From Diplonema japonicum (lineage: Eukaryota > Protista > Euglenozoa: Diplonemea): 64,000 nt of DNA. Under the pieces are notes generated by a model that did not search any database, had not been told where the DNA came from, and saw only the letters and a list, made by a program, of their open reading frames with translations. The translations under genes were made by a program, and so were the position numbers. Shown here piece by piece: positions 6,368 to 50,245 of this stretch. Position 1 is the first letter of the stretch. Each line of letters opens with the position of its first letter. The stretch covers positions 434,001 through 498,000 of the forward strand of contig OZ025696.1 in assembly GCA_964019335.1 (NCBI GenBank). Reading direction: 5' to 3'.

Positions 6368-6562
6368 AACATGCAGTGAAGAGCTGCACAGGGAATAAGG
6401 CCCTGCCGGACCGAACTTTCGTGGCAGTACTAGGTATCTCTCTGGTGCTGTCCTCTTCAGACAAGGTGCACCCTTCAAGGGCTCCACTAGCCTTCTAGTA
6501 GGTCGGAGAAAACCGTTCCCGACCACTGTCTTCGCATTTGCTCTGTGGACAAGGCTATGGAA
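6368..6562 (-). mobile_element. Hammerhead-bearing dispersed repeat, internally deleted copy
   Basis: Aligns with 13244-13408 and 49795-49926. It keeps CTGAAGA-GGACA but has lost the GTC/GAAAC segment, and is absent from the equivalent site of unit B. Confidence 0.75.
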
Positions 6563-8681: not shown

Positions 8682-11600
8682 CTACAGGTACAGGCGCTCG
8701 CTCTGAGTGGGTGGCTCATTCGAGGCGGCCATGGCCATGAGCTCATTGAAGTCATCGAGGGTGGCTATGTTCGCCCCTTGCCGCACGATCATGATCCCCG
8801 CCACACCAGCACACAGCGCCAGCACGGAACCAGCAATGGCCACAATGTACCACGGGAACGACCCCCCATCCTCCTCAGGCTGCATGACAGGTGCCTCCTC
8901 ACCACCAAGCTCGGGAGCACTTCTCGTGCCGCTGCTTTCATTGCTGGGAGACACGGTTTCAGGCACACCACCGTCCCCTGGAGAGAACGTCCTCGGGGCT
9001 TCTGTTGTTTCCTTGCTCGGTGCCACGGTGTCTGTGGTCGTCCCGTTGCCCCCCGGTGACGCCGTCCTCGGGGGCTCAGTGGAGGTGCTTCCTGGAGAAA
9101 GCGTTTCCGGAGCCGCAGTGCTTGGTGCTTCGGTGGAAGGGGCTGCGGTGTCCCCTGGGGTCAGGGTTGCAGGGGCAGCAGTCGTTGCAGGGGATCCTGT
9201 CTTCGGTGCGGGGGTGTCTGGTGCCGCTGTCTTCCCAGGGGTGAGTGTTGCAGGAACCGAAGTGGCTGGTGCTGCAGTGTCAGGGACTGGTGTCCTTGGA
9301 GCAGGTGTTTCAGGTGCCGCTGTCTTCCCAGGGGTCAGTGTTGTTGGCGTCTGCGTTGCGGGAGCCGAAGTGGCTGGTGCTGCAGTGTCAGGGACTGGTG
9401 TCCTTGGAGCAGGAGTCACTGGTGCCGCTGTCTTCCCAGGGGTCAGTGTTGCTGGCGTCTGTGTTGCAGGAGCCGAAGTGACTGGTGGCGTGGTGTTAGG
9501 CGCTGGTGTACTGGGTGAAGCCGTGACAGGGCTAGTTGTGTCGGGAACAAGGGTTTCGGGAGCAGGGGTATCAGGTGCCGCTGTCTTTCCAGGGGTCAGT
9601 GTTGCTGGCGTCTGTGTTGCGGGAGCCGAAGTGACTGGTGGCGTGGTGTTAGGCGCTGGTGTTCTGGGTGAAGACGTGACAGGGCTAGTTGTGTCGGGAA
9701 CAAGGGTTTCAGGAGCAGGGGTATCAGGTGCCGCTGTCTTTCCAGGGGTCAGTGTTGTTGGCGTTCGTGTTGCGGGAGCACTTGTTTCAGGAGCAGAGGT
9801 ATCAGGGGTCGGTGTCTTTGGAGCAAGTGTGTCAGGGGCTGTGGTTCTGGGAGCGAGGGTATCAGGGGCTGATGTCTTTGGTGCAGGAGTGCCAGGAGAA
9901 GAGGTATCAGGGGCAGAAGTATCAGGAGCAAGAGTGTCCGGGGCGGGGGTGTCTGGAGCAGGAGTGTCCGGGGCATCGGTTTTCTCCACAGCGCAGGTTG
10001 TGAAGGAGTTGTCGATGAGGATCCACTGCCTGTAGGACTCCGGACGGTAGCAGACCTTGTACTCTGTCTCACCTTGTAGCTTCGGGAGGGTGCTGGGGCT
10101 CCACTCCGTTGCGGTCCCCACCCTCACCATGGACCCCACGGAGGCGGAGCAGCCGTCCAGCGCCACGCACTCCGTCTCAGCATTCTTGCAGTCCGTTGTG
10201 GTGCCGGCGACGATCGCCACCTTGTCGGAGGCCGACAGCTTGTCCGTCCCGGGGTAGAAGTGGAAGACGGGGGCATCCTTCCCGGGCTTCGGGCAGGCCG
10301 GAGTGAGCGAGAGCTGCGGGTCGCGGTGGCCACAAAGCAGAGCCACAGAGTCTATGTAGCAAGCCCCCGTACCAGCCGGGGAGGTGGAGAACTGGAGCTC
10401 CGCAACCGACTCGAAGCCGTTCGGGATCTTGGGGGCGACAGAGGTCTCCACCACCCCGTCCAAGGTCACCGTGATGTCCTTCGTCTCCCAGTTCAGTGCG
10501 AGCTCGACCTTGTGCCAGGTCCCCAGGTTCACCTTCCCGAAGTAGCTGGTTGGGTCCGCGTCCAGCCTCACTCCGAACGAGTCGCCGATCCCGATGTACA
10601 CGCGGATGCTCTCCGCAGTCGCCGCCTTCAGCGAGACCGCTAGCTGCACGTTCTCCTTTTCTATCTGCGCAAAGAAGGAGAGGGTGGAGGCCCGGATCCC
10701 TCCCGTTGATGAAGAGTAGAGGAAACCGTAGTCCTTGAAGGTGAAGGACCCCGCCCCTTCCTTCTTCACAGCCGTCGTGACCTCTGCGATGGAGGAGGCC
10801 ACCGTCGCCGGGTCGTCGAACGGGAGGTTCACGCTGTGGTGGCACTCCCCGGGAATCTGGAACTCGAGGTCCTTGTGCGACCACACGGGTTTCGTTCCGC
10901 TCTTGAACATCGCCCCAGTGAGGTACAGGTCCACAAGCTCAGTCGCCGAGGTGCGGAAGGTGGGCGCCGCCTTCAGAGGGCCCAGCGTCACCACCTGCCC
11001 CGCGATGGTGACGAGCGAGGTGTCGAGCATCGTCCCCCGAAGCCCGTCCCACCCCGTCGCCGACAGGTGGTCCGGTACCATCGCCTCGATCACCGCCTGC
11101 TTCGTCGCCTCCGAGTCCACCCACTCGTCGTGGTCCCCCACGAGTGTCAGCGTCATCGTCGTCCCCCCCGCCCGAAGCTGGTCCTGCGTCAGCCCCTCCA
11201 CAACGCTCCCCGTCATCAGGATGTAGTCCGTACACCACAGGTGGAACTCGTCGAACCACGCCCCTCCAGATAGGCTCACTTTGCTGATCCCGTCAGGGCA
11301 GCTGCTGCTGAACCCCGAAGTCGCCTCCTTCTTCCCGTCCACGTACAGGTCCACCTTTCCAGCCCCCGCCCAGTCGACGTGCAGGTCGAAGTGGTAGAAC
11401 TCCTTCGGCTCCGCTTTCAGGGTCGCCGTCGCCGCGGCCGTGAACCCAAGGCGCCACGCCCCGTTCGCGTACCGCACCGAGAAGCACGTCCCCGCCGAGC
11501 TGCTGAAGAACGCGGCCGGGGTCTCCGGGTCCGCGAAGCGCGCCGCGTAGAAGGTGATCCTCCGAGGCTTGCTGTGCGTCCCCAGCCCCAGCTTCCCCGC

Positions 11601-13019
11601 CCCAAAGACGGTGTCGTCGTTCTCGTCCCCCAGCTTCCACGACCCGGTCCCTTCCGCAAACTTCGCCACGTCCAAGAGCGACGACCCCGGATCGCCGGTC
11701 GACTCCCACGACCCGAGGTCGCCGTCGAAGGCGTTCACCTGGTTCGCAGGGCAGTCCGCGAACCCGGCGCACTCCAGCCCCCCATAGCCCCCGTCGCACT
11801 TGCACGGCGACTTCGCGTCGTTCGTGCACGTCCCGCGCTCCCCGCACACCTTCGCGTCGTTCGCCGGTACCCCGAAGCACACCGCCTCAGCGTTCACCAC
11901 CGTCACCCCCACCGCACACGTCGTCTCCACCCCGTCGCTCCCCTTGAAGGTCGTCGCCAGCACGAAGTCCTTCCCCACATCCGAGGTGTCCGGGGTGAAG
12001 GCCACCTGCGTGAAGCCCACCCGCCAGATATTCCCGCCATCGGCCACAGTCTTCGTGGTGCGTGCCCCGGGTGCCGTCGTCTCCCCGTACGACACCGTCA
12101 TCGTCTTCCCCTCCGCGTACAGCCCGTTGAACTCCACCAGCCACTCCTTGCTGTGCGGGATGAGGTGCTTCTTCGCCGCACCCCCCCCTCCTCGCGACGT
12201 CCGGCAGGTCGGTGCTGTGAACTCCTTCACGCACCCGTTGTACATGAAGTCGATCGTGTCGACGTCCCCCGCCGACAGCCTCACCTGCTGCCCGATGGGT
12301 GCGGGTGCCACGATCGACGGTGACGACCCCGTTGCGAAGTAGAACGCCCCGTAGTGCATGATGCTCCCGTAGTCGTAGGCCCCGATGCTGCGCCCAGCCG
12401 CCCCCGTCTTCGAGAACTGCCCCAACTCAGAGGGCTTGATCTCTGCCGTGTCCACGAACACGTAGCTGTCCCTGTCGTTCCGCGTCTGCTCGTGCATGAG
12501 CCCCAGGCTGTGCCCCAGCTCGTGGATCGTCGACCCCCCCGAGCAAGACGACGCCAGGTTGACCTGGTTCACATCGTCCACGTCCTGTGTCATCCCGAGG
12601 GGCGAGTTGCAGGCGTTCTTGTCGGAGATGAAGTACACGTACGGCTTGGCACACCCCGCCTTCGTCGCGCACCGCGTGAACCGGATGCACGTCTTCGCCT
12701 CCCAGTGCGCCACAGCGTTCAGGATCCTCCAGTCGTCCGCCGGCAACAGGAAGCTCCCCGCGGGGTTCCTCGGATTCGTCTCCGCCGTCTCGATGTAGTA
12801 CCGCACCTTCCCCTCGGGCCACAGGTTCGAGGTGGTCGCGAAGCTCGACCCCAACAGCCGCCCCTCCCGTTCTCCCGCCTGCAACGGGACCTGGATGTCC
12901 CCCTCCAACAGCGTGTAGTCGTGGTGGCTCTCCTTCGCAGCCCGTCCTTCAACGAGCAGGTCCCCTCCACCAGTAACCCCCAACAACAGCAGCAACAGGT
13001 GCCGGCAGATCCCTTTCAT
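8682..13019 (-). CDS. Type I membrane astacin (M12A) metalloprotease with EGF-like domain, beta-rich domains and Thr/Pro mucin stalk (copy A)
   Basis: Signal peptide, LEGDI pro-motif, HELGHSLGLMHEQTRNDRD, SIMHY Met-turn, EGF Cys pattern, TPAP repeats, C-terminal TM. Start set at MKGICRH (13019) by comparison with copy B. Confidence 0.93.
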   Translation of the reverse strand: MKGICRHLLLLLLGVTGGGDLLVEGRAAKESHHDYTLLEGDIQVPLQAGEREGRLLGSSFATTSNLWPEGKVRYYIETAETNPRNPAGSFLLPADDWRILNAVAHWEAKTCIRFTRCATKAGCAKPYVYFISDKNACNSPLGMTQDVDDVNQVNLASSCSGGSTIHELGHSLGLMHEQTRNDRDSYVFVDTAEIKPSELGQFSKTGAAGRSIGAYDYGSIMHYGAFYFATGSSPSIVAPAPIGQQVRLSAGDVDTIDFMYNGCVKEFTAPTCRTSRGGGGAAKKHLIPHSKEWLVEFNGLYAEGKTMTVSYGETTAPGARTTKTVADGGNIWRVGFTQVAFTPDTSDVGKDFVLATTFKGSDGVETTCAVGVTVVNAEAVCFGVPANDAKVCGERGTCTNDAKSPCKCDGGYGGLECAGFADCPANQVNAFDGDLGSWESTGDPGSSLLDVAKFAEGTGSWKLGDENDDTVFGAGKLGLGTHSKPRRITFYAARFADPETPAAFFSSSAGTCFSVRYANGAWRLGFTAAATATLKAEPKEFYHFDLHVDWAGAGKVDLYVDGKKEATSGFSSSCPDGISKVSLSGGAWFDEFHLWCTDYILMTGSVVEGLTQDQLRAGGTTMTLTLVGDHDEWVDSEATKQAVIEAMVPDHLSATGWDGLRGTMLDTSLVTIAGQVVTLGPLKAAPTFRTSATELVDLYLTGAMFKSGTKPVWSHKDLEFQIPGECHHSVNLPFDDPATVASSIAEVTTAVKKEGAGSFTFKDYGFLYSSSTGGIRASTLSFFAQIEKENVQLAVSLKAATAESIRVYIGIGDSFGVRLDADPTSYFGKVNLGTWHKVELALNWETKDITVTLDGVVETSVAPKIPNGFESVAELQFSTSPAGTGACYIDSVALLCGHRDPQLSLTPACPKPGKDAPVFHFYPGTDKLSASDKVAIVAGTTTDCKNAETECVALDGCSASVGSMVRVGTATEWSPSTLPKLQGETEYKVCYRPESYRQWILIDNSFTTCAVEKTDAPDTPAPDTPAPDTLAPDTSAPDTSSPGTPAPKTSAPDTLAPRTTAPDTLAPKTPTPDTSAPETSAPATRTPTTLTPGKTAAPDTPAPETLVPDTTSPVTSSPRTPAPNTTPPVTSAPATQTPATLTPGKTAAPDTPAPETLVPDTTSPVTASPSTPAPNTTPPVTSAPATQTPATLTPGKTAAPVTPAPRTPVPDTAAPATSAPATQTPTTLTPGKTAAPETPAPRTPVPDTAAPATSVPATLTPGKTAAPDTPAPKTGSPATTAAPATLTPGDTAAPSTEAPSTAAPETLSPGSTSTEPPRTASPGGNGTTTDTVAPSKETTEAPRTFSPGDGGVPETVSPSNESSGTRSAPELGGEEAPVMQPEEDGGSFPWYIVAIAGSVLALCAGVAGIMIVRQGANIATLDDFNELMAMAASNEPPTQSERLYL

Positions 13020-13243
13020 GGTTCTTTTTTTTTTTCTTTTTTCTTTTCTTTTTTTCTTTTTTCTTTTTTGCGGGGTGTACGGCTTTTGCTTTTTTATTAT
13101 GTCGGAAAACCTGTTTTGTATTTGTGAGTTGCGTTGAGTGCTGATGAGGATGAGGATGAGGGGGAAACCTAAATGGGGAAAAGAAATGGGAATAATAAAG
13201 CAAGTTACGAAGGAGAGAGAAAGAAAGAGAGAGAGGTGCACTG

Positions 13244-13630
13244 TACTAGGTACCTCTCAGTTTCGGACATATCTCGCGACTCCTCCAGGTGCTGTCCTCA
13301 TCAGGCGAGAGGCACCCTTCAACGGCTCCTACTAGCGTCCCAGCAGGTTGGAGAGCACTTTTCCCGACCACGGTCTTCGCGTTTGCTCTGTGGACAAGAC
13401 TATGGTAGAGCCAGGTCCTTAGTGGCACCAATGGTTCCATCAAACCTTATAAGCGATCTCGCTGAGGATAGAAGCTACGAGCTACAGGATGGGGACACAG
13501 CTACACACTACGTCTAGTTCTTGTTGTCGGGGTCGGTGGCGTGGGGTCAAGTGTCAGGGTAATAGGGGACGCCTTTCGCGCCGCCCAGTGGGGACCCCGT
13601 GGAGGTGCCAGCTTCCGTCTGCTTAGATGA
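13244..13630 (-). mobile_element. Hammerhead-bearing dispersed repeat, longest copy
   Basis: Homology to the astacin upstream region stops at about 13244; 13244-13408 aligns with two other copies. Right boundary uncertain. Confidence 0.7.
13257..13320 (-). ncRNA. Putative hammerhead ribozyme, non-circularly permuted strand order
   Basis: Minus strand reads gggtgc-c-TCTCGC-CTGATGA-GGACA-gcacct-ggagga-GTC-GCGAGA-ta-TGTCC-GAAAC-t, with all core nucleotides present. Stems covary with the copy at 49811-49874. Confidence 0.75.
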
Positions 13631-13663
13631 CATTTCTTTTTTTGTAAATGTCTCTTTTTTTTT

Positions 13664-14350
13664 TATATTTCACTCAGAAATTACTTCACGCACTGGGGGG
13701 CCCATTACTTCACGCTAAATCTCATTACTTCACGGTGAAATAATGGCCTGTTTTCCGTGAAGTAATAGGGGGTTTACGGTAAATAATATGCCTCGGTAGG
13801 CCAATTTTTGCCTCGGTTCGGTTCCCAGTGGGGCTACTTTTTCCTCTCAGTTTGCTATTTCCCCCCAGGTTCAGCTCAATTGGCCAACTTTTGCCTCGGC
13901 TCAGTTCCAAGTTGGACTACTTTTTCCTCCCAATTTGCCCACTTTTGGCTAGGCCTTGTTCCCAGTTTCTGTGGGTAACTCTTCTGTGGGTAAGGGTAAC
14001 TTAGTCAGCTTACCCAAAGCACCCCAAAAAAGATTTCAAAATACCGAAGCAGCAGAAAAAAAGGAGCCAGCGGCCGCGCTAGGTATGGGAAGGCCTGATT
14101 AGAGATGGTGACAGTGGCAATGCCAGCGACAGCGGCAGCGGCAGCTCTTAGTCAACAAAAGGAGGAAAAACAACTTGTATTGTAACCTTTGTAACCCCTC
14201 TCTTGTTGTACCCCTTGTCACCCTGTTGTGCCCCTTGTGGTGAAGTAATTTCAGAGTGTCGTGAAATAAAACCACTTACCTACCGCCAAGTAATGCTTTA
14301 CCGACCTCGAGGTAACGGTAAAGTCATTACTTGTTGGCAGTAAATAGCTA
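13664..14350 (+). mobile_element. Non-autonomous Crypton-like element
   Basis: 19-bp inverted repeats (cactc[a/t]gaaattacttcac) at 13671 and ending 14258, subterminal attacttcac repeats, then aaataaaac, a palindrome at 14281-14342 and terminal taaatagcta. Same layout as the recombinase-bearing copies. Confidence 0.65.
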
Positions 14351-14392
14351 TTTTTTTTTTTTTTTTTTCAAAATACCAATGCAGGGCCGCCA

Positions 14393-14748
14393 TCGCAAAG
14401 CTCGACCCCAGCAGCCGCCCCTCCCGTTCTCCCGCCTGCAACGGGACCTGGATGTCCCCCTCCAACAGCGTGTAGTCGTGGTGGCTCTCCTTCGCAGCCC
14501 GTCCTTCAACGAGCAGGTCCCCTCCACCAGTAACCCCCAACAACAGCAGCAACAGATGCCGCAGGGTGTTCCCTTCCTCCTTGGTCCCCTCAAGTGCGTC
14601 GCTCTGTGGCCTCAGGGCCCCCCACCACCCTGTTTCTTCGCCGCTTGTTCCCTACAGAACTCGCTTGCGGTTATCTTCCTCGCAGCAGTTGTCGCACGCG
14701 TGTTCGAGTCCCTCCGAGCTTCCGTACCCCTTGGCAGATCCCTTTCAT
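14393..14748 (-). pseudogene. Truncated 5' fragment of the astacin gene with a 172-bp insertion
   Basis: Encodes MKGIC/RHLLLLLLGVTGGG...LLGSSFA and then loses homology; insertion at 14561-14732. Confidence 0.85.
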
Positions 14749-18943: not shown

Positions 18944-21900
18944 CTACAGGTACAGGCGCTCGCTCTGAGTGGGTGGCTCATTCGAGGCCATACACTCAGT
19001 AAACTCATCGAGGGTGACCATGTTCGCCCTATGCCGCACGATCATGATCCCCGCCACACCAGCACACAGCGCCAGCACGGAACCAGCAATGGCCACAATG
19101 TACCACGGGAACGACCCCCCATCCTCCTCAGGCTGCATGACAGGTGCCTCCTCACCACCAAGCTCGGGAGCACTTCTCGTGCCGCTGCTTTCATTGCTGG
19201 GAGACACGGTTTCAGGCACACCACCGTCCCCTGGAGAGAACGTCCTCGGGGCTTCTGTTGTTTCCTTGCTCGGTGCCACGGTGTCTGTGGTCGTCCCGTT
19301 GCCCCCCGGTGACGCCGTCCTCGGGGGCTCAGTGGAGGTGCTTCCTGGAGAAAGCGTTTCCGGAGCCGCAGTGCTTGGTGCTTCGGTGGAAGGGGCTGCG
19401 GTGTCCCCTGGGGTCAGGGTTGCAGGGGCAGCAGTCGTTGCAGGGGATCCTGTCTTCGGTGCGGGGGTGTCTGGTGCCGCTGTCTTCCCAGGGGTGAGTG
19501 TTGCAGGAACCGAAGTGGCTGGTGCTGCAGTGTCAGGGACTGGTGTCCTTGGAGCAGGTGTTTCAGGTGCCGCTGTCTTCCCAGGGGTCAGTGTTGTTGG
19601 CGTCTGCGTTGCGGGAGCCGAAGTGGCTGGTGCTGCAGTGTCAGGGACTGGTGTCCTTGGAGCAGGAGTCACTGGTGCCGCTGTCTTCCCAGGGGTCAGT
19701 GTTGCTGGCGTCTGTGTTACAGGAGCCGTAGTGGCTGGTGCTGCAGTGTCAGGCGCTGGTGTTCTGGGTGAAGCCGTGACAGGGCTAGTTGTGTCGGGAA
19801 CAAGGGTTTCAGGAGCAGGGGTATCAGGTGCCGCTGTCTTTCCAGGGGTCAGTGTTGTTGGCGTTCGTGTTGCGGGAGCACTTGTTTCAGGAGCAGAGGT
19901 ATCAGGGGTCGGTGTCTTTGGAGCAAGTGTGTCAGGGGCTGCAGTTCTGGGAGCGAGGGTATCAGGGGCTGATGTCTTTGGAGCCGAAGTGACTGGCGCT
20001 GGTGTACTGGGTGAAGCCGTGACAGGGCTAGTTGTGTCGGGAACAGGGGTTTCAGGAGAAGAAGTTTCAGGGACTGACGTCTTTGGTGCAGGAGTGTCAG
20101 GAGCAGAGGTATCAGGGGAAGAAGTGTCAGGAGCAGAAGTGTCAGGGGCAGACGTCTTTGGTGCAGGAGTGATAGGAGCAGAGGTATCTGGAGAAGAAGT
20201 TTCAGGGGCCGACGTCCTTGGAGCAGGAGTGTCAGGAGAAGAGGTATCAGGGGCTGATGTCTTTGGAGCAGGAGTGTCAGGGGCTGTGGTTCTGGGAGCG
20301 AGGGTATCAGGGGCTGATGTCTTTGGTGTAGGAGTGTCAGGAGAAGAGGTATCAGGAGAAGAGGTATCTGGAGAAGAGGTATCAGGGGCAGAAGTATCAG
20401 GAGCAAGAGTGTCCGGGGCGGGGGTGTCTGGAGCAGGAGTGTCCGGGGCATCGGTTTTCTCCACAGCGCAGGTTGTGAAGGAGTTGTCGATGAGGATCCA
20501 CTGCCTGTAGGACTCCGGACGGTAGCAGACCTTGTACTCTGTCTCACCTTGTAGCTTCGGGAGGGTGCTGGGGCTCCACTCCGTTGCGGTCCCCACCCTC
20601 ACCATGGACCCCACGGAGGCGGAGCAGCCGTCCAGCGCCACGCACTCCGTCTCAGCATTCTTGCAGTCCGTTGTGGTGCCGGCGACGATCGCCACCTTGT
20701 CGGAGGCCGACAGCTTGTCCGTCCCGGGGTAGAAGTGGAAGACGGGGGCATCCTTCCCGGGCTTCGGGCAGGCCGGAGTGAGCGAGAGCTGCGGGTCGCG
20801 GTGGCCACAAAGCAGAGCCACAGAGTCTATGTAGCAAGCCCCCGTACCAGCCGGGGAGGTGGAGAACTGGAGCTCCGCAACCGACTCGAAGCCGTTCGGG
20901 ATCTTGGGGGCGACAGAGGTCTCCACCACCCCGTCCAAGGTCACCGTGATGTCCTTCGTCTCCCAGTTCAGTGCGAGCTCGACCTTGTGCCAGGTCCCCA
21001 GGTTCACCTTCCCGAAGTAGCTTGTTGGGTCTGTGTTCAGCTTCACTCCGAACGAGTCGCCGATCCCGATGTACACACGGATGCGCTCCCCAGTCGCCGC
21101 CTTCAGCGAAACCGACAGCTGCACGTTCTCCTTTTCTATCTGCGCAAAGAAGGAGAGGGTGGAGGCCCGGATCCCTCCCGTTGATGAAGAGTAGAGGAAA
21201 CCGTAGTCCTTGAAGGTGAAGGACCCCGCCCCTTCCTTCTTCACAGCCGTCGTGACCTCTGCGATGGAGGAGGCCACCGTCGCCGGGTCGTCGAACGGGA
21301 GGTTCACGCTGTGGTGGCACTCCCCGGGAATCTGGAACTCGAGGTCCTTGTGCGACCACACGGGTTTCGTTCCGCTCTTGAACATCGCCCCAGTGAGGTA
21401 CAGGTCCACAAGCTCAGTCGCCGAGGTGCGGAAGGTGGGCGCCGCCTTCAGAGGGCCCAGCGTCACCACCTGCCCCGCGATGGTGACGAGCGAGGTGTCG
21501 AGCATCGTCCCCCGAAGCCCGTCCCACCCCGTCGCCGACAGGTGGTCCGGTACCATCGCCTCGATCACCGCCTGCTTCGTCGCCTCCGAGTCCACCCACT
21601 CGTCGTGGTCCCCCACGAGTGTCAGCGTCATCGTCGTCCCCCCCGCCCGAAGCTGGTCCTGCGTCAGCCCCTCCACAACGCTCCCCGTCATCAGGATGTA
21701 GTCCGTACACCACAGGTGGAACTCGTCGAACCACGCCCCTCCAGATAGGCTCACTTTGCTGATCCCGTCAGGGCAGCTGCTGCTGAACCCCGAAGTCGCC
21801 TCCTTCTTCCCGTCCACGTACAGGTCCACCTTTCCAGCCCCCGCCCAGTCGACGTGCAGGTCGAAGTGGTAGAACTCCTTCGGCTCCGCTTTCAGGGTCG

Positions 21901-23494
21901 CCGTCGCCGCGGCCGTGAACCCAAGGCGCCACGCCCCGTTCGCGTACCGCACCGAGAAGCACGTCCCCGCCGAGCTGCTGAAGAACGCGGCCGGGGTCTC
22001 CGGGTCCGCGAAGCGCGCCGCGTAGAAGGTGATCCTCCGAGGCTTGCTGTGCGTCCCCAGCCCCAGCTTCCCCGCCCCAAAGACGGTGTCGTCGTTCTCG
22101 TCCCCCAGCTTCCACGACCCGGTCCCTTCCGCAAACTTCGCCACGTCCAAGAGCGACGACCCCGGATCGCCGGTCGACTCCCACGACCCGAGGTCGCCGT
22201 CGAAGGCGTTCACCTGGTTCGCAGGGCAGTCCGCGAACCCGGCGCACTCCAGCCCCCCATAGCCCCCGTCGCACTTGCACGGCGACTTCGCGTCGTTCGT
22301 GCACGTCCCGCGCTCCCCGCACACCTTCGCGTCGTTCGCCGGTACCCCGAAGCACACCGCCTCAGCGTTCACCACCGTCACCCCCACCGCACACGTCGTC
22401 TCCACCCCGTCGCTCCCCTTGAAGGTCGTCGCCAGCACGAAGTCCTTCCCCACATCCGAGGTGTCCGGGGTGAAGGCCACCTGCGCGAAGCCCACCCGCC
22501 AGATATTCCCGCCATCGGCCACAGTCTTCGTGGTGCGTGCCCCGGGTGCCGTCGTCTCCCCGTACGACACCGTCATCGTCTTCCCCTCCGCGTACAGCCC
22601 GTTGAACTCCACCAGCCACTCCTTGCTGTGCGGGATGAGGTGCTTCTTCGCCGCCCCTCCCCCTCCTCGCGACGTCCGGCAGGTCGGTGCTGTGAACTCC
22701 TTCACGCACCCGTTGTACATGAAGTCGATCGTGTCAACGTCCCCCGCCGACAGCCCCACCCGCTGCCCGATGGGTGCGGGTGCCACGATCGACGGTGACG
22801 ACCCCGCCGCGAAGTAGAACGCCCCGTAGTGCATGATGCTCCCGTAGTCGTAGGCCCCGATGCTGCGCCCAGCCGCCCCCGTCTTCGAGAACTGCCCCAA
22901 CCCAGAGGGCTTGATCTCTGCCGTGTCCACGAACACGTAGCTGTCCCTGTCGTTCCGCGTCTGCTCGTGCATGAGCCCCAGGCTGTGCCCCAGCTCGTGG
23001 ATCGTCGACCCCCCCGAGCAAGACGACGCCAGGTTGACCTGGTTCACATCGTCCACGTCCTGTGTCATCCCGAGGGGCGAGTTGCAGGCGTTCTTGTCGG
23101 AGATGAAGTACACGTACGGCTTGGCACACCCCGCCTTCGTCGCGCACCGCGTGAACCGGATGCACGTCTTCGCCTCCCAGTGCGCCACAGCGTTCAGGAT
23201 CCTCCAGTCGTCCGCCGGCAACAGGAAGCTCCCCGCGGGGTTCCTCGGATTCGTCTCCGCCGTCTCGATGTAGTACCGCACCTTCCCCTCGGGCCACAGG
23301 TTCGAGGTGGTCGCGAAGCTCGACCCCAACAGCCGCCCCTCCCGTTCTCCCGCCTGCAACGGGACCTGGATGTCCCCCTCCAACAGCGTGTAGTCGTGGT
23401 GGCTCTCCTTCGCAGCCCGTCCTTCAACGAGCAGGTCCCCTCCACCAGTAACCCCCAACAACAGCAGCAACAGGTGCCGGCAGATCCCTTTCAT
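18944..23494 (-). CDS. Type I membrane astacin metalloprotease (copy B)
   Basis: Near-identical to copy A; differs mainly in the stalk repeat array and cytoplasmic tail. Confidence 0.93.
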   Translation of the reverse strand: MKGICRHLLLLLLGVTGGGDLLVEGRAAKESHHDYTLLEGDIQVPLQAGEREGRLLGSSFATTSNLWPEGKVRYYIETAETNPRNPAGSFLLPADDWRILNAVAHWEAKTCIRFTRCATKAGCAKPYVYFISDKNACNSPLGMTQDVDDVNQVNLASSCSGGSTIHELGHSLGLMHEQTRNDRDSYVFVDTAEIKPSGLGQFSKTGAAGRSIGAYDYGSIMHYGAFYFAAGSSPSIVAPAPIGQRVGLSAGDVDTIDFMYNGCVKEFTAPTCRTSRGGGGAAKKHLIPHSKEWLVEFNGLYAEGKTMTVSYGETTAPGARTTKTVADGGNIWRVGFAQVAFTPDTSDVGKDFVLATTFKGSDGVETTCAVGVTVVNAEAVCFGVPANDAKVCGERGTCTNDAKSPCKCDGGYGGLECAGFADCPANQVNAFDGDLGSWESTGDPGSSLLDVAKFAEGTGSWKLGDENDDTVFGAGKLGLGTHSKPRRITFYAARFADPETPAAFFSSSAGTCFSVRYANGAWRLGFTAAATATLKAEPKEFYHFDLHVDWAGAGKVDLYVDGKKEATSGFSSSCPDGISKVSLSGGAWFDEFHLWCTDYILMTGSVVEGLTQDQLRAGGTTMTLTLVGDHDEWVDSEATKQAVIEAMVPDHLSATGWDGLRGTMLDTSLVTIAGQVVTLGPLKAAPTFRTSATELVDLYLTGAMFKSGTKPVWSHKDLEFQIPGECHHSVNLPFDDPATVASSIAEVTTAVKKEGAGSFTFKDYGFLYSSSTGGIRASTLSFFAQIEKENVQLSVSLKAATGERIRVYIGIGDSFGVKLNTDPTSYFGKVNLGTWHKVELALNWETKDITVTLDGVVETSVAPKIPNGFESVAELQFSTSPAGTGACYIDSVALLCGHRDPQLSLTPACPKPGKDAPVFHFYPGTDKLSASDKVAIVAGTTTDCKNAETECVALDGCSASVGSMVRVGTATEWSPSTLPKLQGETEYKVCYRPESYRQWILIDNSFTTCAVEKTDAPDTPAPDTPAPDTLAPDTSAPDTSSPDTSSPDTSSPDTPTPKTSAPDTLAPRTTAPDTPAPKTSAPDTSSPDTPAPRTSAPETSSPDTSAPITPAPKTSAPDTSAPDTSSPDTSAPDTPAPKTSVPETSSPETPVPDTTSPVTASPSTPAPVTSAPKTSAPDTLAPRTAAPDTLAPKTPTPDTSAPETSAPATRTPTTLTPGKTAAPDTPAPETLVPDTTSPVTASPRTPAPDTAAPATTAPVTQTPATLTPGKTAAPVTPAPRTPVPDTAAPATSAPATQTPTTLTPGKTAAPETPAPRTPVPDTAAPATSVPATLTPGKTAAPDTPAPKTGSPATTAAPATLTPGDTAAPSTEAPSTAAPETLSPGSTSTEPPRTASPGGNGTTTDTVAPSKETTEAPRTFSPGDGGVPETVSPSNESSGTRSAPELGGEEAPVMQPEEDGGSFPWYIVAIAGSVLALCAGVAGIMIVRHRANMVTLDEFTECMASNEPPTQSERLYL

Positions 23495-49598: not shown

Positions 49599-49739
49599 AA
49601 AAAAGAAGAAGAATGAATTTGATATCACTGTTTCTCATATGGTGTGATACCTAAACCAAATCAGGCAGCGATTACGGTCGAAAGGAAAGAAGGGCACCAA
49701 TTAAATGGTGCAAGAAAGAAAGAAAAAAAAACTCAAATT

Positions 49740-49926
49740 AACATGCAAACTCCTAAAGCGAAAGCCGCATGCCCTAAAAGGGAGGAGGTATGGTCAGTAC
49801 TAGGTAGCTCTCAGTTTCGATCTAATCTTGCGACTCCTCCAAGTGCTGATCTCTTCAGGCAAGTAGCACCCTTCATTGGCTCCCACTAGCATCCCAGCAG
49901 GTATGGAGAGTACTTTTCCCGACCAC
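49740..49926 (-). mobile_element. Hammerhead-bearing dispersed repeat, copy 3
   Basis: Aligns with 13244-13371; the aacatgca end motif lies at about the same offset as in the 6368 copy. Confidence 0.75.
49811..49874 (-). ncRNA. Putative non-circularly permuted hammerhead ribozyme, second intact copy
   Basis: Minus strand reads gggtgc-ta-CTTGC-CTGAAGA-GATC-a-gcactt-ggagga-GTC-GCAAG-atta-GATC-GAAAC-t. Confidence 0.75.
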
Positions 49927-50071
49927 AAAAAAAAAAAGGGAAAAAAAAAAAAAGAATGACATAACCAATAACAACCCTTTTTTTTTGCAGCATCATACCT
50001 TTTAGGTATCCCTGTTCCCGAGGGTTATCTGATGACACAAAAAAAAGTTCTGGGGAGAACCCCCAGCAGGT

Positions 50072-50245
<174 letters not shown>

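Follow-up and report, generated by a model that had tools for sequence, protein, structure and literature searches.

[quoted passage not shown] That same work, in 2023, was the first to show a functional RNA with a non-circular permutation; type SGC was found in metatranscriptomes, and two similar sequences of type CSG were found in metagenome DNA. [quoted passage not shown] In both the type-SGC and the type-CSG ribozymes, stems I and II are joined by a helix (PMC10085705). The evidence for type CSG was called weaker by its authors because the covariation events were few, or "modest" in their wording (PMC10085705). In our full-text literature searches, no later report of further type-CSG ribozymes was found, and no hammerheads were found to be reported in kinetoplastid, diplonemid, or other euglenozoan retroposons.

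The window considered here, by which we mean the whole 64-kb stretch of Diplonema japonicum DNA that was analysed (64,000 nt), contains two copies of a motif with the C-S-G order, both on the minus strand. Copy 1 lies at 13257-13320, as obtained from the minus-strand reading and a descriptor search, and copy 2, a member of subfamily S1, lies at 49811-49874, with all positions offset by +36554. Every hammerhead core base (CUGAnGA, GAAA, and U16.1-H17) is present in both copies, and the blocks follow each other on one strand in the order C (CUGAnGA), S (the cleavage site), and G (GAAA), with zero insertions between the blocks and their adjoining stems. Read from 5′ to 3′, the first half of the motif consists of GGGUGC, a 2-nt spacer, CUCGC or CUUGC, CUGAnGA, GGAC or GAUC, one A, and GCACYU, and the second half consists of GGAGG, AGU, C17, GCGAG or GCAAG, a 4-nt linker, GUCC or GAUC, GAA, and A15.1-C-U. 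In copy 1, the 5′ strand of helix a (GGGUGC, 13317-13312) precedes the 5′ strand of stem I (CUCGC, 13309-13305), CUGAUGA (13304-13298), the 5′ strand of stem II (GGAC, 13297-13294), and the 3′ strand of helix a (GCACCU, 13292-13287). These are followed by the 3′ strand of stem III (AGU, 13281-13279), C17 (13278), the 3′ strand of stem I (GCGAG, 13277-13273), the linker AUAU, the 3′ strand of stem II (GUCC, 13268-13265), and GAA with A15.1-C-U (13264-13259), the latter being the 5′ strand of stem III. According to the descriptor, stems I, II, and III of copy 1 comprise 6, 5, and 3 bp, respectively. In copy 2, N7 is A, stem I is CUUGC/GCAAG, stem II is GAUC/GAUC, and the 3′ strand of helix a reads GCACUU. 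The active fold of copy 1 has a competitor, an alternative helix of 10 bp formed by GGUGCCUCUC and GAGAGGUACC. From hammerhead numbering and by analogy with CSG-1 and CSG-2, cleavage is predicted between C17 and G1.1, that is, between 13278 and 13277 in copy 1 and between 49832 and 49831 in copy 2.

The likeness to the published type-CSG ribozymes, whose layout was derived for CSG-1 from the oligonucleotides in the supplement of PMC10085705, extends well beyond the block order. The complete core, the order of all eight helix strands, a helix tying stems I and II at their far ends, and a linker of 4-5 nt between the 3′ strands of these stems are shared. In the present motif the tying helix is helix a, in which GGGUGC pairs with GCACYU over 6 bp. 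The spacers are of similar length, being 2, 1, 5, and 4 nt here versus 1, 0, 3, and 5 nt in the CSG ribozymes, and the stems are shorter than those of CSG-1 (5 vs 6 bp in stem I, 4 vs 5 bp in stem II, and 3 vs 5 bp in stem III). In contrast, there is no sequence similarity to CSG-1 or CSG-2 outside the core. The motif is thus best explained as a type-CSG, that is, non-circularly permuted and pseudoknotted, hammerhead ribozyme; we consider this identification likely, whereas catalysis and its site are inferred in the absence of cleavage data. The original prediction had described the two minus-strand copies with a full core and the differences listed above, which hold base for base, and had claimed a non-cyclic strand order and an extra helix, GGGUGC/GCACYU. 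Both of the latter claims hold as well: the order is C-S-G, and the extra helix corresponds to that joining stems I and II in PMC10085705. It had also stated that rearranged hammerheads have rarely been reported; the report in question is PMC10085705, whose two type-CSG examples cleave in vitro at the homologous site.

Could such a motif arise by chance? A C-S-G descriptor of our own was constructed, demanding a full core with exact CUGAnGA and GAAA, U16.1, and an H17 other than G. It also set minimum lengths of 4 bp for stems I and II, both of which had to adjoin the core directly, and of 3 bp for stem III, and it allowed no linker longer than 10 nt. On both strands of the window it matches only copies 1 and 2, and it gives no match in 200 dinucleotide-preserving shuffles of the window. 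Nor does it match anything outside the family in 337 kb of further loci. On these descriptor and shuffle results, a chance match can very probably be ruled out for the hammerhead motif.

Searches against Rfam returned nothing at the gathering score for the whole window and nothing with E values up to 10 for positions 13000-13600, so that a classical hammerhead of type I, II, or III, as modelled by a nested three-way-junction covariance model, finds no match here. This silence is expected because covariance models cannot represent the crossing strand order of a permuted motif. Comparison with Rfam had been proposed along with the original prediction, as had comparison with published rearranged motifs; the former gives no match and the latter a match to the type-CSG layout. 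A nested alternative fold was also considered and rejected, since the minimum free energy folds differ between three subfamilies and are no better than those of shuffles (z of −1.1, +1.7, and −0.1). On the opposite strand, the nested minimum free energy fold is neither conserved nor unusually stable. RNAalifold applied to the 5′ domain and the 3′ part of the surrounding element gave only small hairpins and nothing else convincing.

The motif is repeated in the genome, and its copies were used to examine covariation, with a haplotype table of 92 copies and an alignment (A2) of 81 copies, on which the pseudoknotted structure was counted. In the 81 copies, 96.6% of the cells are paired in the predicted structure, and a shift of the 3′ partners by 1-3 columns lowers this value to 8-48%. 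Double-change cells number 57, compared to 25.4 ± 3.1 in shuffles, and none of 500 shuffles reaches the observed value. Three base pairs show true double changes: columns 22-54 in stem I (C-G or U-A), and columns 33-65 (G-C or A-U) and 34-63 (A-U or U-A) in stem II. The stem I form CUCGC/GCGAG is found in subfamilies with stem II GGAC/GUCC or GGUC/GACC, and the form CUUGC/GCAAG in subfamilies with GAUC/GAUC, GGUC/GACC, or GGAC/GUCC. The stem I pair and the A-U/U-A pair at columns 34-63 of stem II occur in all four possible combinations, which requires recurrence or recombination. For stems I and II, covariation supports Watson-Crick helices.

The remaining helices provide weaker support of this kind. 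Helix a is paired in 96.7% of cells and varies only between G-C and G-U, and stem III, which has only 3 bp, is 99.5% paired with changes that are one-sided (G-U) and without double covariation. One multi-copy lineage has G at 16.3 (GGU), which pairs as G-U. Read on the opposite strand, the G-U wobbles would turn into A-C mismatches, so that only the minus strand of the window fits the structure.

It could be argued that the resemblance is a chance one within a repeat and that the covariation is a by-product of subfamily structure. In favor of this explanation, the copies are related and the cells are not independent events; the number of independent compensatory events is consequently uncertain, with a floor of three. 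Per pair, 5-7 changes were counted on a tree from the flanking columns, whose resolution is too poor for this count to be trusted. Against it stand the lack of descriptor matches in the shuffles, the occurrence of all four combinations of the two pairs, and the fact that the stem positions varying between subfamilies change together with their predicted partners, intermediates being rare. Collectively, this explanation is all but excluded.

The conservation of the core follows the pattern of a hammerhead. Hammerheads leave two core positions free, N7 and H17, and it is only at these two positions that the core varies at the level of subfamilies, with A, U, or C at N7 and C, U, or A at H17; H17 is never G in 100 listed copies. 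Every subfamily consensus keeps C3, U4, G5, A6, G8, A9, G12, A13, A14, and A15.1-U16.1, and all changes between subfamilies within the 67-nt motif are compensatory, wobble-compatible, in a linker, or at N7 or H17. Individual insertions decay in the core like neutral DNA, and only 52 of the 92 sampled family copies pass the strict descriptor, which indicates a constraint on the source elements and not visibly on each insertion. The original prediction had rested on compensatory changes between two copies, and these changes hold and recur in the 81 aligned copies and in several subfamilies, with a further stem II state, GGUC/GACC, that it had not described. One outcome that was to refute it, a larger alignment with a freely varying core and non-covarying stems, is not what is found at the level of subfamilies. 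Its interpretation is likely to be right as far as sequence analysis can test it, every such part being supported, and catalysis remains inferred.

The hammerhead motif is the central module of a SINE-like, non-autonomous retroposon family. The full element, represented by a reference copy (L060:1371-1629), is ~260 nt long, lacks an ORF, and carries the hammerhead at ~116-182. A first search of the 62.5-Mb assembly to which the window belongs gave 218 candidates, and a 32-nt degenerate pattern over the C and S blocks, with up to 3 mismatches allowed, gave 153 matches in the genome versus 0 for a reversed control. The genome holds at least 153 near-intact copies; 89 further loci were inspected, and 53 listed or unlisted copies were left out. 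An exact-pattern scan of JGI metagenome contigs for the family gave 0 matches.

Three copies of the retroposon are found on the minus strand of the window. Copy 1 (13243-13450) is a long form covering reference positions 11-193, with the 3′ tail missing or replaced, and copy 2 (49719-49924) is a short form covering positions 64-259 that is flanked on either side by T runs and has its type-A tail in full; the two share about 130-200 nt. Copy 3 (~6368-6562) is degenerate and dead, retaining the C block and a tail of type C but having lost the S and G blocks by internal deletion. Throughout the genome the copies are dispersed, with variable 5′ truncation and a constant 3′ end, and are flanked by T-rich target-site duplications of 8-19 nt, which are clear at loci L053, L017, L011, and L012. 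The 5′ truncation with intact 3′ ends, together with these duplications, implies an RNA intermediate of the same polarity as the hammerhead. What the sequences show is the motif, its covariation, the structure of the family, and its orientation.

Copy starts are concentrated at position 1 and at GGUCGGG (reference 64-66), the latter in about half of the copies. At the GGUCGGG starts, for example at window positions 49922-49924 on the minus strand, 0-2 extra bases and a T run are seen upstream. This peak might reflect a defined RNA 5′ end produced by a promoter or by processing. An HDV-like fold behind it was sought by eye without finding a P1 partner, and Rfam gave nothing here either.

Some features of familiar element types are missing from the family. 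The A-rich 3′ tail of a classical SINE is absent; T-rich sequence is found in the flanks and duplications, and the 3′ tail comes in three alternative forms. Nor does the family show the direct or tandem hammerhead repeats that delimit the unit of a retrozyme released as circular RNA, as there is one hammerhead per element and the copies are dispersed and only occasionally adjacent. The three 3′ tails follow one and the same hammerhead module (loci L002, L010, and L049; window 6368-6440): one ends in GUUAAUUUGAR, another ends in GUGACAUCAUC, and the third begins with a sequence of the CCACGAAAGUUCGGUCC type. Different partner LINEs are one possible source of this diversity. A composite variant of the element was observed around positions 1440-1630 in each of L059, L074, L081, L086, L089, and L090, in which an insertion of ~30-40 nt is seen along with a partial duplication of CUCAC-CUGAAGA immediately ahead of the C block; three of these loci have another sequence in place of the G block.

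Assembled contigs from sequencing runs show that the element is highly repeated, and each of the four runs has an A/T polymorphism at N7 (window 13300). Two runs that bear the labels of other organisms contain the element, as compared over window positions 13214-13415, at 90-99% identity almost without flanking unique DNA, which means either that the family extends beyond this assembly or that the samples were mixed.

The genomic setting relates the ribozyme strand to transcription. All long ORFs of the window are on the minus strand, and their products include pectinacetylesterase-like and astacin-like proteins, a polymerase of the Y family, and receptor adenylate cyclases encoded in an array, with retroposon copy 1 located just upstream of the astacin-like ORF. 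The neighbours of these proteins in a protein atlas give a weak hint of Euglenozoa, a lead and no more. Among the fetched loci, 71 of 75 copies are oriented like the nearest long ORF (a stop-free frame of at least 180 aa), and the copies are intergenic, at a median of ~330-340 nt from both the upstream stop and the downstream ATG. From this co-orientation and intergenic position, the ribozyme strand is deduced to be the strand transcribed through these regions. It is possible that the orientation bias stems simply from insertion into sense-strand T tracts.

Some other features of the region were observed. Two tandem, near-identical ORFs of ~1517 aa lie at 8682-13241 and 18944-23494 on the minus strand, the first with an astacin (M12A) domain, an unusual feature in a genome of the trypanosomatid type. 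An unrelated second repeat (13517-14425) lies immediately upstream of copy 1; it is shared by only a few of the fetched loci, and its contig depth in DNA-like runs exceeds that of the hammerhead element several-fold. Upstream of copy 2 (~50050-50230), there are a long (CA)n microsatellite and a run of C, and T runs of 40 or more are frequent in intergenic regions of the genome.

The likely course of events is as follows. The element is copied through a same-strand RNA and inserts in T-rich intergenic tracts, and the insertions almost always end up sense within polycistronic transcription units. In the RNA, stems I (5-6 bp) and II (4-5 bp) would lie side by side, with their far ends closed by the 4-nt linker and the 6-bp helix a, and the 3-bp stem III would complete the three-way core. 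By analogy with the known type-CSG ribozymes, Mg2+-dependent self-cleavage is predicted 3′ of C17, which would yield a 5′ fragment with a 2′,3′-cyclic phosphate and a 3′ fragment starting at G1.1. Self-cleavage after GUC had been inferred already in the original prediction, and the site is homologous to that of CSG-1 and CSG-2, but catalysis by the present sequence remains an inference. The role of such cleavage can only be guessed; our best, admittedly speculative, suggestion is a slow processing of element-containing or read-through transcripts, as in other retroelement ribozymes.

No genomic footprint of cleavage could be recognized. Most genomic copies span the predicted cleavage site, indicating that the usual template for retrotransposition is uncleaved RNA. 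An excess of 5′ ends at G1.1 is not significant, as 3-4 of ~100 copies begin there, compared to 4 at CGAAAC, ~12 nt further on. Frequent use of cleaved 3′ fragments as templates for retrotransposition would have left many copies starting at G1.1. The sequencing runs examined consist of assembled contigs of unknown kind and hence carry no information on RNA ends. The missing footprint would fit a slow or regulated ribozyme, and it would fit an inactive one just as well.

The latter possibility amounts to a rival explanation, in which the motif is a conserved pseudoknotted module of the retroposon RNA, such as a handle for the partner reverse transcriptase or a stability element, that resembles a hammerhead but is catalytically dead or negligibly active, owing to the shortness of stem III or to an unfavorable permuted fold. 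It is supported by the 3-bp stem III without double covariation, by the copies that hold both sides of the site and the lack of significant enrichment of 5′ ends there, and by the published type-CSG rates, which are already low. Against it, all 11 invariant core bases are kept in exact register to two helices proven by covariation, and the core varies only at the two positions tolerated by hammerheads, whereas a structural handle would have no reason to retain CUGAnGA, GAAA, and UH. We therefore regard a dead module as unlikely.

The short stem III also leads to a second rival, in which the motif works solely as an intermolecular ribozyme, through dimerization, in trans, or with the aid of a helper protein. 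The caveat of a 3-bp stem III, compared to 5 bp in CSG-1, was raised in the original prediction and stands. Hammerheads with a short stem III are known from retroelements (PMC4209133), and those of Penelope-like elements and newt satellites act as dimers. On the other hand, the C-S-G pseudoknot already tethers both strands of stem III, and inspection of the copies and the alignment revealed no palindromic extension that could lengthen stem III in a dimer. A strictly intermolecular ribozyme thus appears very unlikely, and a self-cleaving type-CSG hammerhead remains the preferred interpretation.

A bolder reading of the same data is possible but far from established, namely that here, for the first time, a family of non-circularly permuted ribozymes can be tied to a living organism, that it is active in vivo, and that its cleavage may have been co-opted, since the element lands in the sense orientation in intergenic tracts of polycistronic units. 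If so, cuts could be made in precursor RNAs or 3′ UTRs, and the ribozyme could control mRNA ends or decay. This would resemble the SIDER2 retroposons of Leishmania, which are reported to direct site-specific mRNA cleavage.

Under the more cautious type-CSG interpretation, the motif likely represents a new, large, and organism-anchored family of a very rare, already known hammerhead type, with its catalysis and role inferred. Type CSG was previously known from two environmental sequences only, and the present genome provides its first known host organism. A large family with subfamilies, compensatory changes, and a genomic setting would strengthen the case for type CSG as a biological ribozyme. 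It would also show that permuted ribozymes occur in nuclear retroelements, where standard covariance-model annotation misses them, and would supply an organism in which the folding, speed, and function of a knotted ribozyme could be tested.

Several known systems share some of these properties. Type SGC, represented by the HRIMA-1 motif (PMC10085705), is likewise non-circularly permuted and pseudoknotted and has a helix joining stems I and II, but its blocks are arranged in the S-G-C rotation and it comes from metatranscriptomes of presumed circular RNA replicons, not from genomic DNA. Plant retrozymes (PMC4918200) and Penelope-like elements (PMC4209133) are similar in that the hammerhead is internal to a retroelement and most copies keep the whole ribozyme; SINE-like repeats of schistosomes also carry hammerheads (reviewed in PMC6155905). 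Unlike the present motif, those retroelement hammerheads are nested, of the classical types I or III, and detected by Rfam models, and they often reside in tandem or LTR-like repeats that yield circular RNAs, whereas the present family has a permuted order, is invisible to Rfam, and consists of dispersed single copies. An HDV-like ribozyme is located at the 5′ end of the trypanosomatid L1Tc/NARTc retroposons, and its cleavage at the 5′ end of the element explains their defined 5′ terminus. The present family resembles them as a retroposon-borne ribozyme in a euglenozoan-type genome with polycistronic transcription, but the ribozyme belongs to another class and the predicted cleavage site is in the middle of the element. 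The closest relatives in architecture, CSG-1 and CSG-2, are two metagenome sequences from unknown organisms with modest covariation and no biological context, whereas the present family, although its activity is only inferred, comprises at least 153 copies in one eukaryotic nuclear genome, carried by a retroposon and placed on the transcribed strand.
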